Part shown: positions 1,661-59,841 of the stretch, piece after piece
Layout of the letters: every line of letters starts with the position of its first letter
Position numbering within the stretch: position 1 is the stretch's first letter
Source of the DNA: Octopus sinensis
Taxonomy: Eukaryota
Direction: 5' to 3'
DNA: 64,000 nt
Assembly (NCBI RefSeq): GCF_006345805.1
Contig: NC_043010.1
Location: 60,636,001 to 60,700,000 of the forward strand
The notes under the pieces: generated by a model
What the model saw: the letters and a program-made list of their open reading frames with translations, nothing else
Databases searched by the model: none
Told to the model about the DNA's origin: nothing
Translations under genes and position numbers: made by a program

Positions 1661-4060
1661 ATGACAGCATATATTGGTCTACTGTGTCTTCTACATTTAC
1701 TGATCACCCTTGTACTGTCCATAGATATTACATACCATGTCAAGGAAGAAGACAGTCCTCACACCTATATAGGAGACATTGCTGTTGACTCCAACTTATC
1801 ACACCCTCTCACACATCAACAACACACTCTCATTACATTTACACAACTACAAAGGACAGTCGAGAGTGGTTCTCACTTATTTAATGTCACCAACTCAGGA
1901 AAACTATACACTACTCAAACACTGGATGCTGAGTCTCTGTGTACATACAACAAGGAATGTTCCAGAATAGTTAAAGTAGCAGTGAGGAAAGGAAAGACAT
2001 TTTTAAAAATTCTTAAAATTAAAATATTAATAGAAGACATCAATGATCATTCACCAGAATTTCCAAAGAATGAAATCACAATTCAATTTTTGGAGAGAGA
2101 CTTTGAAGGTTCTAAAATACCCCTTCTAAATGCCATTGATAAAGACATTTCAATAAAGAATTCTCAAATTACATATGTGATTAAGAAAAGTAAGAGAGAA
2201 GTATTTGCACTCTCAATTGAAAAGCGGTATGATGGTGTTTTCATACCTACTCTGACTTTGAAAAGCAAATTAGACAGGGAAGTGAAAGACTCATATATGT
2301 TGACCCTGGAGGCTAAAGATGGAGGGTACCCTCCCAAAACAGCTACACTCAAAGTACACATATCTGTAACAGATGTCAATGATAACATACCTGTATTTTC
2401 ACAGAAATTCTATAACATCTCTATAAATAATTCACATCAAAGACATTTACCAATTCTTACTTTAAAAGCCACAGATCAAGATTCTGGAGACAATGGAAAG
2501 ATTTCTTATCATTTCAACCATAAAACATCCCAAAATATCCAGAAATATTTTGTATTAGATAAGAAAACTGGAGATTTATTTTTACACAATAATTTTCATT
2601 TTAGTAAAAAGCAATCTTATAAATTATTTATTGAAGCACAGGATGAAGGAAATCCACCCTTAAGTTCTGTAACCAAAGTCCAGATTCACATTATTAATAA
2701 CCAAAATACTGCTCCATTGATTAACATAGATTTTGTATCTCCTTTATCAGAGAGCTCAGCAGCAGTTTCAGAAGACAGTGAAGTAGATAGTTTTATAGCT
2801 TATGTTATGGTCACTGACAATGATAGTGGGCCTAATGGTGAGGTTATCTGTGATTTAAAACATGATAAATTTAAACTTGCCAAAATGGATTCTAAAGAAT
2901 ATAAAATGATTGTTAAAGGCCATCTTGACAGAGAAATAAGGGACCACTATAAAGTATCTATTGTGTGTCATGACATGGGGTCACCTCAACTAGAAAGTAA
3001 AAAATATTTCTCTGTCAAAGTAACTGATGTCAATGATGTAGAACCACATTTTACCAAAGAGACTTTCCAATTCCTCACATATGAAAACCAGAAAGTTGAC
3101 TTCCCTATTGGCTTCATCAATGCTACAGACCCTGATCTTGGAGATGGAGGCCAACTTACATATTCTATCATCAATGATAACAACAATGATAACATTCCTT
3201 TCCAACTGACAAAATATGGATTTATTTCTACATCACAACCAATAGATCGAGAAATGAAAGACATCTATAAGTTCAAGGTTTTAGTGAAAGATAATGGAAC
3301 ACCTTCTCTCAATGACACTGCCAATATTGTTATTGAGATTCTAGATAAAAATGATAATGCTCCGTATTTTACGTTTCCTAATAATGACCCTTACAATCTC
3401 GATGTCCACTACCATCCACACAGTAAGAAGGACATCACAATTCTGAGAGCATCTGACAAAGACACTGGAAACAATGCTTTCCTCACATATGGAATACTGA
3501 GATCCAATGATAAAAACCTGTTTACAGTGAACTCACACACTGGTGTGTTATCTTTCTCTCGCACAGTTTACCAAAATGATGCAGGAACATATGAGCTGCA
3601 GTTTATAGTGAAAGACGGTGGTACTCCAGTTCAATCAGCAACAACTGCTATCATACTAACACTGTTTGTTAGTAATGATACATCTCCAATGTTGACTGCT
3701 GTGCCATTCCAGTCTGGTCACGACCTGAATATGACTTGGGTAATTATCATTGTAGCAGCAGCTGTAATACTATCTGTGGCTATCGTAGTGTCCATAACAC
3801 TGTGTGTTTTCAGATGTATTAATCACACAAATAACTCACCCACAACAGCAGAGAATCCCAACTTTCTCTCTCAGACTGAGATGAGACAATTACTGTATCA
3901 GACTAACAATCCTGTTGCAATAACGAGAAATGCAGAAGAGATATTTAACCGAAATCTTCAGACAATAAAATCTAAAAGTCAGTTTTTTCTGGAGATGGAA
4001 CAGACACCAGATGAGTGGAAATTCTCAACAACACAAAGGAGACTTCCACCTGTGCCTCAG
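1661..4060 (+). CDS. Pcdh: Protocadherin C1, large ectodomain exon (signal peptide, EC1-EC6, TM, proximal cytoplasmic tail)
   Basis: Open 800 codons. Hydrophobic leader MTAYIGLLCLLHLLITLVLS; cadherin motifs DINDH, LDRE, DVNDN, ATDQD, DKNDNAP; EC1 C-X5-C (CTYNKEC); TM WVIIIVAAAVILSVAIVVSITLCVF. Phase-0 donor CAG|GTAAAT at 4060/4061; acceptor TTTTGTAG 38 nt upstream of ATG. Symbol is family level only. Confidence 0.97.
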
Positions 4061-4438
4061 GTAAATATATTTTGAAACAATCCAGTTGTTGCATCAAATT
4101 TCTTTACAATATTCCTGCAAACATATTTTATACATCGTGTTTATTTCCATGTTGTGTTCCATTCCTTATGTCTTTGTCATGAAACACAATGGCTTTTTCA
4201 TAATTTTACATTTTACAGAAGAAATAGACAGAATTACATGGACTTCATTAAACTTGTATCTTTGTCTTGTTTATTCTAAGTTTATTTTAATTAACCAAGA
4301 AAAAGTTTATTATAATCTTTCTGCTCATTTTAAATGCATTCCATTCTTGTGTCATACCAGGGACATTCTAGAATATAAATGCACGTGTTTCTTCTTTTTA
4401 ACATTATGCTTCACTCTGCTTTGTTTTCTAATCAACAG

Positions 4439-4827
4439 AGATGTGATTCAATCCATAGTCAAGGACGTCGCACCAGTTCCATCATGTCTTACAACAGTGA
4501 CACCTTAGCATCCCAAAAGGACAGAGAAGCTAGCAAGAGTAATGGCAAGACTAAACCATATGATGAGATACCTGCAGAACCAGGTAACTTTTATCAAAAC
4601 ATAACATATAAATGTAATTGCCTTTATTACTGTAGGACAATATATAATGTTATGCTTAGTGTAATATAAGATCAATGTTTCTATCTTTATATATTGGAGT
4701 TGTTATATTGAAATGTAATTTGTGTTTGTATATTTGATATTTTGCAGAATATACCAATGACAATCCAGTGGCAGCCACAATACTAAAGGGACAACAAATA
4801 CAAGATACCTATCTACAGCCAACATAG
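4439..4827 (+). CDS. Pcdh: C1 cytoplasmic exons 2 (4439-4583) and 3 (4748-4827)
   Basis: AATCAACAG|AGA..CCAG|GTAACT (145 nt, phase 0 to 1), then TTTTGCAG|AA..TAG TAG. Phases chain with exon 1, giving RCDSIHSQGRRTSSIMSYNSDTLASQKDREASKSNGKTKPYDEIPAEP-EYTNDNPVAATILKGQQIQDTYLQPT*. Predicted from splice signals, no transcript evidence. Confidence 0.82.
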
Positions 4828-57015: not shown

Positions 57016-57447
57016 TCATTTTATTTAACATATATATATATAGATATAGATATAGATATATATATAAAGAGAACACGAATGGTGTTTAAAACCCATTTCT
57101 GTTCTCTATTTATACCTACACCACATTTGGATCTATGGTTTGAATTAGATTTGGTACTTACAAACAGTATCCTGCCAAAACTTGTGATCTTCATTATTGT
57201 TTATCTCACTGTGAAATCTGTTATTGTACCTAGCCATTTCTGGCATCCTATGTACTGATGTGTCCAGGTTTCATTGCATCCTTACAATTAATCTATATAT
57301 ATATATATATATATATATATATGCGTTAGACAATTGTTATTTTGCTTGTGATTTCTTTACTTTAAATTTTATTCAGACTTTAAATATTTCTCTTGCTTTT
57401 TTTTTGTAGCAATTTCTCCTGCTAAAGTGTGATGAAGAATTCCAGAC

Positions 57448-59841
57448 ATGACAGCATATATTGGTCTACTGTGTCTTCTACCTTTACTGATCACCCTTGT
57501 ACTGTCCATAGATATTACATACCATGTCAAGGAAGAAGACAGCCTCACACCTATATAGGAGACATTGCTGTTGACTCCAACTTATCACACCCTCTCACAC
57601 ATCAACAACACACTCTCATTACATTTACACAACTACAAAGGACAGTCGAGAGTGGTTCTCACTTATTTAATGTCACCAACTCAGGAAAACTATACACTAC
57701 TCAAACACTGGATGCTGAGTCTCTGTGTACATACAACAAGGAATGTTCCAGAATTGTTAAGGTAGCAGTGAGGAAAGGAAAAACTTTTATGAAAATATTA
57801 AAAGTAAAAATATTAATAGATGACATCAATGACCATTCTCCAGAATTTCCACAGAATGAAATCACAATAAAGTTTTTGGAAAGAGACAGTAAAGGTACTA
57901 AAATCCCTCTTCTAAATGCCATTGATGAAGATGTTTCAATAAAGAATTCTCAAATTACATATATGATTATGAAAAGTGAAAGAGAACCATTTTCTCTCTC
58001 AGTTACAAAACGTGATGGTATTTTTATACCTGAATTAATTTTGGAAGACATATTAGACAGGGAAGTAAAAGACTCATATATGTTGACCTTAGAAGCTAAA
58101 GATGGAGGGAATCCTCCCAAAACAGCTACACTCAAGGTACACGTATCAGTGATGGATGTGAATGATAATATACCTGTATTTTCACGAAAAGTCTACAACA
58201 TCTCTATAGATAATTCACACCAAAGACATTTACCAATTCTTACTTTAAAAGCCACAGATCAAGATTCTGGAGAGAATGGAAAGATTTCTTACCATTTCAA
58301 CCATAAAACATCTCGAAATGTCCAGAAATATTTTGTATTAGATAAGAAAACTGGAGATTTATTTTTACATGATAATTTTCAGGTTAGTAAAAAGCAGACA
58401 TATAAATTATTTATTGAAGCAAGAGATGGAGGGAATCCACCTCTAAAATCAGTAGCCAGAGTTCACATTTACATAATTAATAACCAAAATATTGCTCCAT
58501 TAATAAATATAGATTTTGTATCTCCTTTATCAGAGAGTTCAGCAGCGGTTTCAGAAGACAGTGAAGTAGATAGTTTTATAGCTTATGTTATGGTCACTGA
58601 CAATGATAGTGGACCTAATGGTGAGGTTATCTGTGATTTAAAACATGATAAGTTTAAACTTGCCAAAATAGATTCTAAAGATTATAAAATAATTGTTAAG
58701 GGCCATCTTGACAGAGAAATAAGGGACCACTATAAAGTATCTATTGTGTGTCATGACATGGGGTCACCTCAACTAGAAAGCAAAAAATATTTCTCTGTCA
58801 AAGTAACTGATGTCAATGATGTAGAACCACATTTTACCAAAGAGACATTCCAATTCCTCACCTATGAAAACCAGAAAGTTGACTTCCCTATTGGCTTCAT
58901 CAATGCTACAGACCCTGATCTGGGAGATGGAGGCCAACTTACATATTCTATCATCAATGATAACAACAATGATAACATTCCTTTCCAACTGACAAATATG
59001 GATTTATTTCTACATCACAATCAATAGATCGAGAAATGAAAGACATCTATAAGTTCAGGTTTTAGTGAAAGATAATGGAACACCTTCTCTCAATGACACT
59101 GCCAATATTGTTATTGAGATTCTAGATAAAAATGATAATGCTCCGTATTTTACGTTTCCTAATAATGACCCTTACAATCTCGATGTCCACTACCATCCAC
59201 ACAGTAAGAAGGACATCACAATTCTGAGAGCATCTGACAAAGACACTGGAAACAATGCTTTCCTCACATATGGAATACTGAGATCCAATGATAAAAACCT
59301 GTTTACAGTGAACTCACACACTGGTGTGTTATCTTTCTCTCGCACAGTTTACCAAAATGATGCAGGAACATATGAGCTGCAGTTTATAGTGAAAGACGGT
59401 GGTACTCCAGTTCAATCAGCAACAACTGCTATCATACTAACACTGTTTGTTAGTAATGATACATCTCCAATGTTGACTGCTGTGCCATTCCAGTCTGGTC
59501 ACGACCTGAATATGACTTGGGTAATTATCATTGTAGCAGCAGCTGTAATACTATCTGTGGCTATTGTAGTGTCCATAACACTGTGTGTTTTCAGATGTAT
59601 TAATCACACAAATAACTCACCCACAACAGCAGAGAATCCCAACTTTCTCTCTCAGACTGAGATGAGACAATTACTGTATCAGACTAACAATCCTGTTGCA
59701 ATAACGAGAAATGCAGAAGAGATATTTAACCGAAATCTTCAGACAATAAAATCTAAAAGTCAGTTTTTTCTGGAGATGGAACAGACACCAGATGAGTGGA
59801 AATTCTCAACAACACAAAGGAGACTTCCACCTGTGCCTCAG
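57448..59841 (+). CDS. Pcdh: Protocadherin C7, large exon, three frameshifts as assembled
   Basis: Paralogous ATG at 57448 (CCAGACATGACAGC); 1-nt deletions near 57543, 58995 and 59056; 3-nt deletion in EC2; donor 59841/59842. Confidence 0.85.

Follow-up and report, generated by a model that had tools for sequence, protein, structure and literature searches.

The nearest known counterparts of the genes reported here are the alpha, beta and gamma protocadherins of the vertebrate clusters and the delta2 protocadherins (Pcdh8, 10, 17, 18 and 19). The genes themselves form a tandem array in a 64,000-nucleotide stretch of the Octopus sinensis genome (assembly GCF_006345805.1, contig NC_043010.1, positions 60,636,001 to 60,700,000), which was analysed as a whole and is called the window below. 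The array is one of the cephalopod protocadherin expansions and consists of O. sinensis genes of the 'protocadherin beta-15-like' type; the octopus expansion is independent of the vertebrate clusters (PMC9068888). The question it bears on is whether the large protocadherin expansions of cephalopods act as neuronal identity labels, like the vertebrate clusters.

In the trans dimers of delta and clustered protocadherins, the A-B-E-D face of the second extracellular cadherin (EC) repeat meets the C-F-G face of EC3, and the C-F-G face of EC1 meets the A-B-E-D face of EC4, with the two-fold axis at the EC2-EC3 linker (Harrison et al., PMC7082078). Isoform specificity in the vertebrate clusters is carried by the EC2:EC3 contact, and a division between a common EC1:EC4 affinity and an isoform-specific EC2:EC3 contact has been proposed (PMC5001838). 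This division is partly disputed in PMC5106212, where specificity is also placed in EC1:EC4. In the same clusters synonymous divergence (dS) is maximal in EC2/EC3 and minimal in EC5/EC6, a pattern that is read as gene conversion sparing EC2-EC3 (PMC4978886, citing Noonan 2004). The amino-acid identity of mouse alpha isoforms is 96% in EC1, 69% in EC2, 59% in EC3, 85% in EC4 and 98% in EC5 (PMC4978886). For very similar clustered genes of cephalopods, recent duplication and/or gene conversion has already been proposed at the level of whole genes or trees (PMC9068888, Albertin 2022; PMC6339937, Styfhals 2019). No domain-resolved study of cephalopod homogenisation, with EC2-EC3 spared and EC5-6 or non-coding DNA homogenised, was found in the literature searched, which does not prove that none exists.

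The octopus array has the layout of the vertebrate clusters, with a constant scaffold and a variable EC2-EC3 part. The explanation that best accounts for the data as a whole, and which we consider probable, is a regionally restricted concerted evolution of the paralogs from which EC2-EC3 is spared.

Organization of the array and identity of the proteins

Joining the nine long open reading frames (ORFs) of the window across frameshifts gives seven head-to-tail protocadherin genes (C1 to C7), all on the + strand and spaced by 6.6-15.3 kb, and the window is one section of a longer array in which complete protocadherin genes follow each other in tandem. In every copy the large exon follows an acceptor (TTTTCTTTTGTAG/, the slash marking the splice site) located 38 nucleotides (nt) before the ATG, contains 800 codons for a signal peptide, EC1-EC6, a transmembrane (TM) segment and a proximal tail, and ends in CAG/GTAAAT. 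Each large exon is then followed by its own exon 2 (145 nt) and exon 3 (80 nt, stop TAG), both within 0.8-1.9 kb of exon 1. NCBI models found by homology also join the tail gene by gene (…PPVPQ/RCDSIHSQ…PAEP/EYTNDN…YLQPT). Head-to-tail exons of ~2.4 kb coding for six EC repeats, a TM segment and a proximal tail are thus common to the array and to the vertebrate alpha, beta and gamma clusters, but the latter use shared constant exons, which were not found in the units of the window. The members of the array are complete genes rather than variable exons joined to common constant exons, as is also described for cephalopod protocadherins, in which each gene is complete (PMC9068888).

The encoded proteins are six-EC protocadherins with calcium-binding linker motifs. 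Pfam Cadherin was matched in five stretches (E=1.4e-74) and Cadherin_2, the protocadherin-type family, in EC1, and amino acids (aa) 23-666 align to the EC1-6 structures 6vg1 (Xenopus Pcdh8.1) and 6e6b (mouse gamma-B4). The calcium-binding motifs E145, AID-D (158-162), DRE (205-207) and DxNDN (238-242) are invariant, and so are the core positions. An AlphaFold2 model of EC1-4 (pLDDT 86.7) was best matched in Foldseek by Pcdh18, gamma-C4, Pcdh8.1, Pcdh17 and Pcdh19 (E ~1e-44 to 1e-42). In sequence and fold together the best matches are the delta2 protocadherins (27-33% identity), which likewise have six EC repeats. However, whereas the octopus genes are arrayed and evolve in concert, the delta2 genes are single and dispersed and do neither, and a cis interaction of their ectodomains is not detectable.

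Near-identical and diverged blocks alternate along the gene

Any two copies have 1-6 residue differences in aa 1-114, and in aa 355-800 C1 has 3 with C2 and 7 with C5 (11 and 17 of 1338 nt, respectively). Across EC2 (aa 135-246), by contrast, C1 and C2 differ at 20 residues and C1 and C5 at 34, concentrated in aa 136-156 and 181-202, and EC3 is intermediate, with 8-19 residue differences in all pairs. The first-pass annotation, made from the letters of the window alone, had described this pattern as diversity confined to EC2 and, to a lesser degree, EC3, between a near-invariant EC1 and a near-invariant region from EC4 to the tail. Its residue counts were reproduced and the contrast holds, but not the restriction to EC2, since the diverged segment begins in the last strand of EC1 and ends in the first one of EC4.

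The same contrast is found at synonymous sites. By the NG86 method, dS is 0.41 in aa 108-375 and 0.027 in aa 376-800; by region it amounts to 0.025 in aa 1-107, 0.51 in EC2, 0.32 in EC3, 0.035 in EC4-6 and 0.008 in the TM segment and tail. Overall, the copies are separated by a dS of ~0.03 in aa 1-105 and 376-800 and of ~0.4-0.5 in aa 106-375. A maximum likelihood (ML) codon analysis gave tree lengths of 3.85 substitutions per codon for the variable part and 0.285 for the constant part, a 13.5-fold ratio, and the contrast between the two parts is far above chance. In a sliding profile the synonymous divergence changes in sharp steps at aa ~106 and ~376. The variable part of the window array also contains a low-dS island within EC3 (aa ~256-300), which is weaker in the O. 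vulgaris copies and absent from the Argonauta copies described below.

When whole units were aligned, blocks of ~1-2% and of 15-40% nucleotide divergence were found to alternate, non-coding DNA included. Intron 2 has a divergence (K) of 0.013 among copies; like the proximal 3' untranslated region (UTR), it varies no more than the constant coding part. In intron 1, in the distal 3' flank and upstream of the acceptor, aligned positions differ by 23-36%, if an alignment is possible at all. The boundaries between blocks fall on exon and splice landmarks, and identical runs of up to 785 nt are shared between non-adjacent copies.

A further conserved block, non-coding and ~400-580 nt long, lies ~1.3 kb past the stop codon of each of the seven genes, with K ~0.01-0.02 among copies. 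It contains (TG)n, (CAG)n and (CT)n runs, the lengths of which vary between copies, and ends in a donor-like AATGCAG/GTAAGT, 2.4-11 kb upstream of the next acceptor. Because of this donor-like end, and because the sole acceptor downstream of the block on that strand is the one preceding the next ATG, the block is a candidate for the promoter and non-coding 5' leader exon of the following gene. If so, it would parallel the per-exon promoters of the vertebrate clusters.

Concerted evolution in Octopus and Argonauta

The window genes were compared with five copies from O. vulgaris (GCA_951406725.2, chromosome OX597827.1, 79.29-79.39 Mb), three from Argonauta hians and three further O. sinensis copies that do not overlap the window (CM016872.1, 60.50-60.53 Mb). 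The mosaic profile and its two boundaries, at aa ~106 and ~376, recur in all three species. Within O. sinensis, dS is 0.027 in the constant part (aa 376-800) and 0.49 in the variable part (aa 105-255); the corresponding values are 0.057 and 0.52 within O. vulgaris and 0.078 and 0.46 within Argonauta, and they rise to 0.27 and 0.75-0.83 between Octopus and Argonauta. The non-coding blocks behave like the constant part: K of the leader-like block is 0.01 within Octopus, 0.07 within Argonauta and 0.27 between the genera, and that of the block formed by exon 2, intron 2 and exon 3 is 0.02, 0.09 and 0.20, respectively.

In the 1275 nt of the constant part, 78 differences are fixed between Octopus and Argonauta and none between O. 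sinensis and O. vulgaris, the paralogs of which have 19 polymorphisms in common. In ML trees of 46 proteins the genus label changes once for EC5-6 (support 99) and six times for EC2-3, where two subfamily clades (support 99) each contain both genera. These genus-fixed differences and the contrasting EC5-6 and EC2-3 trees demonstrate concerted evolution. With a ~15-fold lower dS, the inclusion of non-coding blocks, the genus-specific fixation and the grouping of EC5-6 by genus, the earlier proposal that the regions outside EC2-EC3 are homogenised is borne out.

Distant protocadherin subfamilies encoded on the same chromosomes (proteins P0020-P0045) were observed to have different EC2-EC4 repeats and cytoplasmic tails and the same genus-specific EC5-EC6; the homogenisation of EC5-EC6 thus reaches well beyond the array of the window. 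In a sliding profile, identity between different subfamilies of one genus exceeds that within one subfamily across genera only in aa 501-680. EC5-EC6 is homogenised even between subfamilies that predate the split of Octopus and Argonauta.

The mechanism is most likely gene conversion. Short-tract conversion is favoured over unequal crossing-over alone because five homogenised blocks alternate with diverged ones and because the 785-nt runs link non-adjacent copies. A recent duplication of whole units followed by hypermutation targeted to EC2 was also considered and rejected, as divergence in intron 1 and in the DNA between the genes equals that of EC2, and the EC2-3 lineages cross genera.

Exchange of patches within EC2-EC3

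Significant shared runs (p<=0.01, Sawyer-type permutation test) were detected inside aa 105-365 in 15 of 105 pairs. The nearest paralog of C2 changes along this part from C1 to C3 (2 differences in 183 nt), then to the O. sinensis gene S_8 and back to C1. Between C2 and C3 there are 27 differences in nt 339-481 but 2 in nt 482-666, and most of the differences between these copies (50/60) are variants that are also present in other paralogs. EC2-EC3 thus takes part in exchange as well, through short tracts that reshuffle existing variants without erasing them.

A similar event can be followed between species. In the syntenic pair formed by S_9 (O. sinensis) and V_2 (O. vulgaris), dS is 0.226 in the variable and 0.037 in the constant part, and a patch of seven differences at aa 144-150 consists of variants that occur in other paralogs. 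The patch resembles the result of a recent micro-conversion, later than the species split, in the stretch of EC2 that varies most. The neighbouring pairs S_8-S_9 (O. sinensis CM016872.1, 60.51-60.53 Mb) and V_1-V_2 (O. vulgaris) indicate that the order of the array is conserved between the two species.

Location of the variable residues

Within the strands of EC2-EC3, variability is correlated at lag 2 (rho 0.51, p=1e-5) but not at lag 1 (rho 0.09); each strand thus varies on one of its faces. Hypervariable sites, defined by an entropy of at least 1 bit, were mapped at the level of strands. In EC2 they occupy 14/30 positions of strands A, B, E and D and 4/27 of strands C, F and G in Octopus (p=0.012), and 18/30 and 3/27, respectively, in Argonauta (p=0.0002). 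In EC3 of Argonauta the proportions are reversed (2/20 and 13/27, p=0.01), the variable sites of this repeat being mainly on strand G, with some on F. The enriched faces of EC2 and EC3 are those that make up the EC2:EC3 contact in solved protocadherin dimers (PMC7082078). The hot positions coincide between Octopus and Argonauta (Spearman 0.57). When sites were classed as hydrophobic or polar by the residue of C1, hypervariable and invariant sites were indistinguishable (p=1.0).

The partner domains EC2 and EC3 both vary and the partner domains EC1 and EC4 are both near-invariant, which fits a common EC1:EC4 contact combined with an isoform-specific EC2:EC3 contact. By analogy with the vertebrate dimers, a specificity code in EC2-EC3 is plausible. 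Being near-invariant, EC1 and EC4 cannot add specificity within the array, unlike the EC1:EC4 contact of vertebrates (PMC5106212). Two vertebrate specificity positions fall on variable sites of C1, gamma-B 125 on aa ~156 and gamma-A 206 on aa ~237-238 (where T, I and M vary), although these correspondences are anecdotal and were not used as evidence. The cis-interface residues of the clustered type are only partly conserved: in the alignment to gamma-B4 (6e6b), Y532 of gamma-B7 corresponds to F572, a conservative change, and V560 to the arginine of ITILRASDKD, so that the latter is not conserved.

Selection on the variable part

The first-pass annotation had placed EC2 under diversifying selection, with which the codon analyses disagree. 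In the 15 Octopus genes, the ratio of non-synonymous to synonymous divergence (omega, dN/dS), was estimated by ML (GY+F3X4, starting tree) and amounts to 0.178 in aa 105-365 and 0.182 in aa 376-800. The sliding dN/dS analysis suggested with that claim, made in windows of 20 codons, gave a maximum of 0.54 in the variable part, most windows lying between 0.07 and 0.33. In EC2, dS is raised as much as dN, and the amino-acid excess scales with synonymous divergence.

Omega is nevertheless not uniform among sites. Hot sites were defined by variability in the Argonauta proteins and omega was measured in the Octopus genes, which avoids circularity; invariant sites have a value of 0.07, the hottest classes have values of 0.44-0.55, and in the five closest pairs omega is 0.47. 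In a clean ortholog pair, S_8 (O. sinensis) and V_1 (O. vulgaris), it is 0.40 in the variable and 0.08 in the constant part. No window and no hot-site class had an omega above 1 in these region and site-class estimates; per-site likelihood models may yet reveal a few positively selected codons. Because omega is equal in both parts and exceeds 1 in neither, the extra protein diversity of EC2-EC3 is best seen as old, unhomogenised sequence, probably under a relaxed but still purifying constraint at surface sites.

The view that positive selection drives the diversity of EC2 by accelerated amino-acid change, in a gene that is otherwise homogenised, is a possible but doubtful alternative. The recurrence of hot sites in both genera, on the predicted interface faces, would be expected from it, as would the climb of omega at these sites and in the S_8/V_1 pair, and the finding of equal boundaries in both genera points to selection that maintains the diversity of the region. 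It is opposed by the equality of omega in the two parts, by the lack of any window or site class above 1, by the parallel rise of dS and dN, and by the fact that most differences between close copies are variants common to other paralogs, exchanged rather than new. The over-reading is thereby corrected, as the diversity is explained without positive selection and partly by the reshuffling of existing patches.

Proposed mechanism and remaining alternatives

According to the model of regionally restricted concerted evolution, repeated non-reciprocal exchange between paralogs, most likely by short-tract gene conversion and possibly with some unequal crossing-over, would keep five blocks of each ~7-kb unit near-identical. 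These would be the non-coding promoter- or leader-like block; the splice acceptor with the 5' UTR and EC1; the EC3 island, in the window array only; the region from EC4 to the end of exon 1; and the block from exon 2 through intron 2 to exon 3. Old divergence would be kept between them, in the leader intron, in aa 106-375 (the end of EC1, EC2, EC3 and the start of EC4), in intron 1 and in the distal 3' flank. As in the nearest relatives of solved structure, the proteins presumably pair as antiparallel homodimers through EC1-4, and with a common EC1:EC4 contact and isoform-specific EC2:EC3 contacts each gene would add its own homophilic label to a scaffold common to all. Selection against the loss of EC2-EC3 differences would then hold the conversion boundaries, at aa ~106 and ~376, in both Octopus and Argonauta.

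Several observations weigh against this model. Gene conversion and unequal crossing-over are inseparable with these data. Members of the window's subfamily still tend to cluster by genus in the EC2-3 tree (support 84 and 94), although the dS of their variable part (0.25-0.78) is above the neutral estimate between genera (~0.27); the discrepancy is at best partly accounted for by a possible inflation of dS through import of patches from diverged paralogs. Intron 1 and the leader intron escaped homogenisation with no selection having to be invoked, so that divergence alone may block conversion. In EC3 of Octopus, hypervariable sites are at 2/20 positions of strands A, B, E and D and 6/27 of strands C, F and G (p=0.44), and the EC3 specificity position 253 of gamma-B aligns with the invariant H287. 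The recognition code as such rests on analogy, and in the O. sinensis assembly the reading frame is disrupted in three or four of the seven genes.

The third of these points leads to an alternative that we regard as unlikely, in which the mosaic is neutral, mismatch repair blocks conversion across diverged segments, and EC2-EC3 is an old block like intron 1 and carries no code. Non-coding blocks do escape in the same manner, omega is equal in the variable and constant parts, and the EC3 island indicates that tracts can move. However, the boundaries at aa ~106 and ~376 hold in three species despite long independent homogenisation. EC2-EC3, which has almost no indels, exchanges short patches and is still not homogenised, and its variable sites are face-specific and coincide between genera.

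The quality of the O. sinensis assembly raises another possibility, that the identical parts arose by repeat collapse or mis-polishing. The large exon is intact in four of the seven copies, and single-base deletions, mostly in short homopolymers, occur in C3 (four), C4 (one) and C7 (three). All eight are located in near-identical parts and none in the variable third, with a chance probability of ~0.04, a distribution that poor polishing would produce wherever reads fit more than one copy; the five O. vulgaris and three Argonauta copies are all intact. A ninth single-base deletion, in exon 3 of C2, is likewise in a near-identical part. We suspect that the frameshifts are such polishing errors rather than marks of real pseudogenes. 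The NCBI model P0006 ('protocadherin beta-15-like [Octopus sinensis]') is a gene model built around the frameshifts of C7. As the origin of the mosaic, an assembly artefact is very improbable: the mosaic is present in two further independent assemblies and its boundaries fall at exon and splice landmarks. Collapse in particular is excluded by the agreement of the three assemblies, by the 19 polymorphisms shared between O. sinensis and O. vulgaris and by the 78 genus-fixed differences.

Cephalopod protocadherin mRNAs undergo dense A-to-I editing, and purifying selection at the nucleotide level, for example on RNA structures for this editing, could conserve synonymous sites and intron 2 among paralogs, but it is scarcely credible as the cause of their identity because it would conserve the sequence between genera as well, whereas dS and leader K between genera are both 0.27, about neutral, against 0.01-0.08 within species.

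Comparison with other recognition systems

The first-pass annotation had also proposed that the array reached the vertebrate design independently, and this is well supported, with dS highest in EC2/EC3 and lowest in EC5/EC6 of the vertebrate clusters (PMC4978886) and an identity profile of mouse alpha isoforms almost equal to that of the octopus array. The boundaries are equal in two octopod genera and the layout is that of vertebrates, despite a different gene structure and origin. On the octopus side the documented features include the homogenised non-coding blocks and the homogenisation of EC5-6 across subfamilies.

In MHC class I/II and KIR genes, too, short conversion patches reshuffle pre-existing variants of the recognition part while the rest of the gene is uniform. 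The contact residues of these proteins have an omega above 1, whereas none was detected in the octopus array. The array is a convergent instance of a known evolutionary regime and no new kind of system.

A more far-reaching proposal, which we put forward tentatively and consider rather unlikely in its full form, is that octopods convergently built the entire logic of the vertebrate clusters from separate genes. EC1:EC4 affinity and an EC2:EC3 code, diversified by exchange of patches instead of selection on point mutations, would be combined with cis pairing of any isoforms through the homogenised EC5-EC6 and with a homogenised promoter/leader block for the stochastic choice of one gene per neuron, resulting in a combinatorial barcode by which cephalopod neurons would recognise themselves.

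At the level of sequence, evolution treats the protein as a constant scaffold with a variable EC2-EC3 cassette. The analogy with vertebrates now becomes concrete, as it names residues to be swapped, pairs expected not to cross-bind (C1 and C5) and EC5-6 as a possible cis module.

Features of the window

The coordinates of the seven genes and of the associated blocks and deletions are listed in Table 1.

Table 1. Coordinates of the protocadherin genes C1 to C7 and associated features in the window (slashes in sequences mark splice sites)
Feature	Position	Strand	Remarks
C1 large exon	1623..4060	+	acceptor TTTTGTAG/ at 1622/1623; ATG 1661; 800 codons; CAG/GTAAAT; intact
C1 diverged segment	~1976-2785	+	aa 106-375
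C1 exon 2 (RCDSIHSQ...PAEP)	4439..4583	+	145 nt; tail carried by NCBI models
C1 intron 2	4584-4747	+	~99% identical among copies
C1 exon 3 (EYTNDNPVAATILKGQQIQDTYLQPT, stop TAG)	4748..4827	+	
C1 downstream conserved non-coding block	5399..5787	+	conservation to ~5975 (full extent 5399-5975); donor-like end AATGCAG/GTAAGT
C2 large exon	16947..19384	+	ATG 16985; intact
C2 exon 2	19570-19714	+	
C2 exon 3	19879-19957	+	1 base shorter than in other copies
C2 exon 3 single-base deletion	~19900		
C2 leader-like block	20838-21227	+	full extent 20838-~21400
C3 large exon	23588..26018	+	ATG 23626; 4 single-base deletions and 1 in-frame codon deletion
C3 single-base deletions	~24835, ~25473, ~25704, ~25803		
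C3 exon 2	26187-26331	+	
C3 exon 3	26496-26575	+	
C3 leader-like block	27166-27568	+	full extent 27166-~27750
C4 large exon	33143..35576	+	ATG 33181; 1 single-base deletion and 1 in-frame codon deletion in EC2
C4 single-base deletion	~35119		
C4 exon 2	35761-35905	+	
C4 exon 3	36070-36149	+	
C4 leader-like block	36749-37143	+	full extent 36749-~37330
C5 large exon	40659..43096	+	ATG 40697; intact; EC2 most divergent of the copies
C5 exon 2	43434-43578	+	
C5 exon 3	43743-43822	+	
C5 leader-like block	44655-45051	+	full extent 44655-~45240
C6 large exon	48314..50751	+	ATG 48352; intact
C6 exon 2	52304-52448	+	
C6 exon 3	52613-52692	+	
C6 leader-like block	53537-53936	+	full extent 53537-~54120
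C7 large exon	57410..59841	+	ATG 57448; 3 single-base deletions and 1 in-frame codon deletion
C7 single-base deletions	~57543, ~58994, ~59057		
C7 exon 2	60218-60362	+	
C7 exon 3	60527-60606	+	
C7 leader-like block	61273-61668	+	full extent 61273-~61860

Intron 1 of C6 (50752-52303) is 1.55 kb long, compared to 0.17-0.38 kb in the other copies, presumably as a result of an insertion. The spacer between C1 and C2 contains a G+C-rich insert at ~10000-16200 (G+C content 0.45-0.50 versus ~0.32). A long interspersed nuclear element (LINE)-type ORF with endonuclease and reverse-transcriptase domains was found in this insert on the minus strand (12721-15084), together with its 3' ORF (11964-12617, minus strand) and a partial inverted copy of the latter at 15578-16192 on the plus strand. 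Two identical ORFs of 133 aa, 1042 nt apart (10036-10437 and 11078-11479), had no Pfam match. Long AT, TG and CT microsatellites in the spacers (8634-9137, 1500-1560 and 37900-38420) give rise to spurious low-complexity ORFs.

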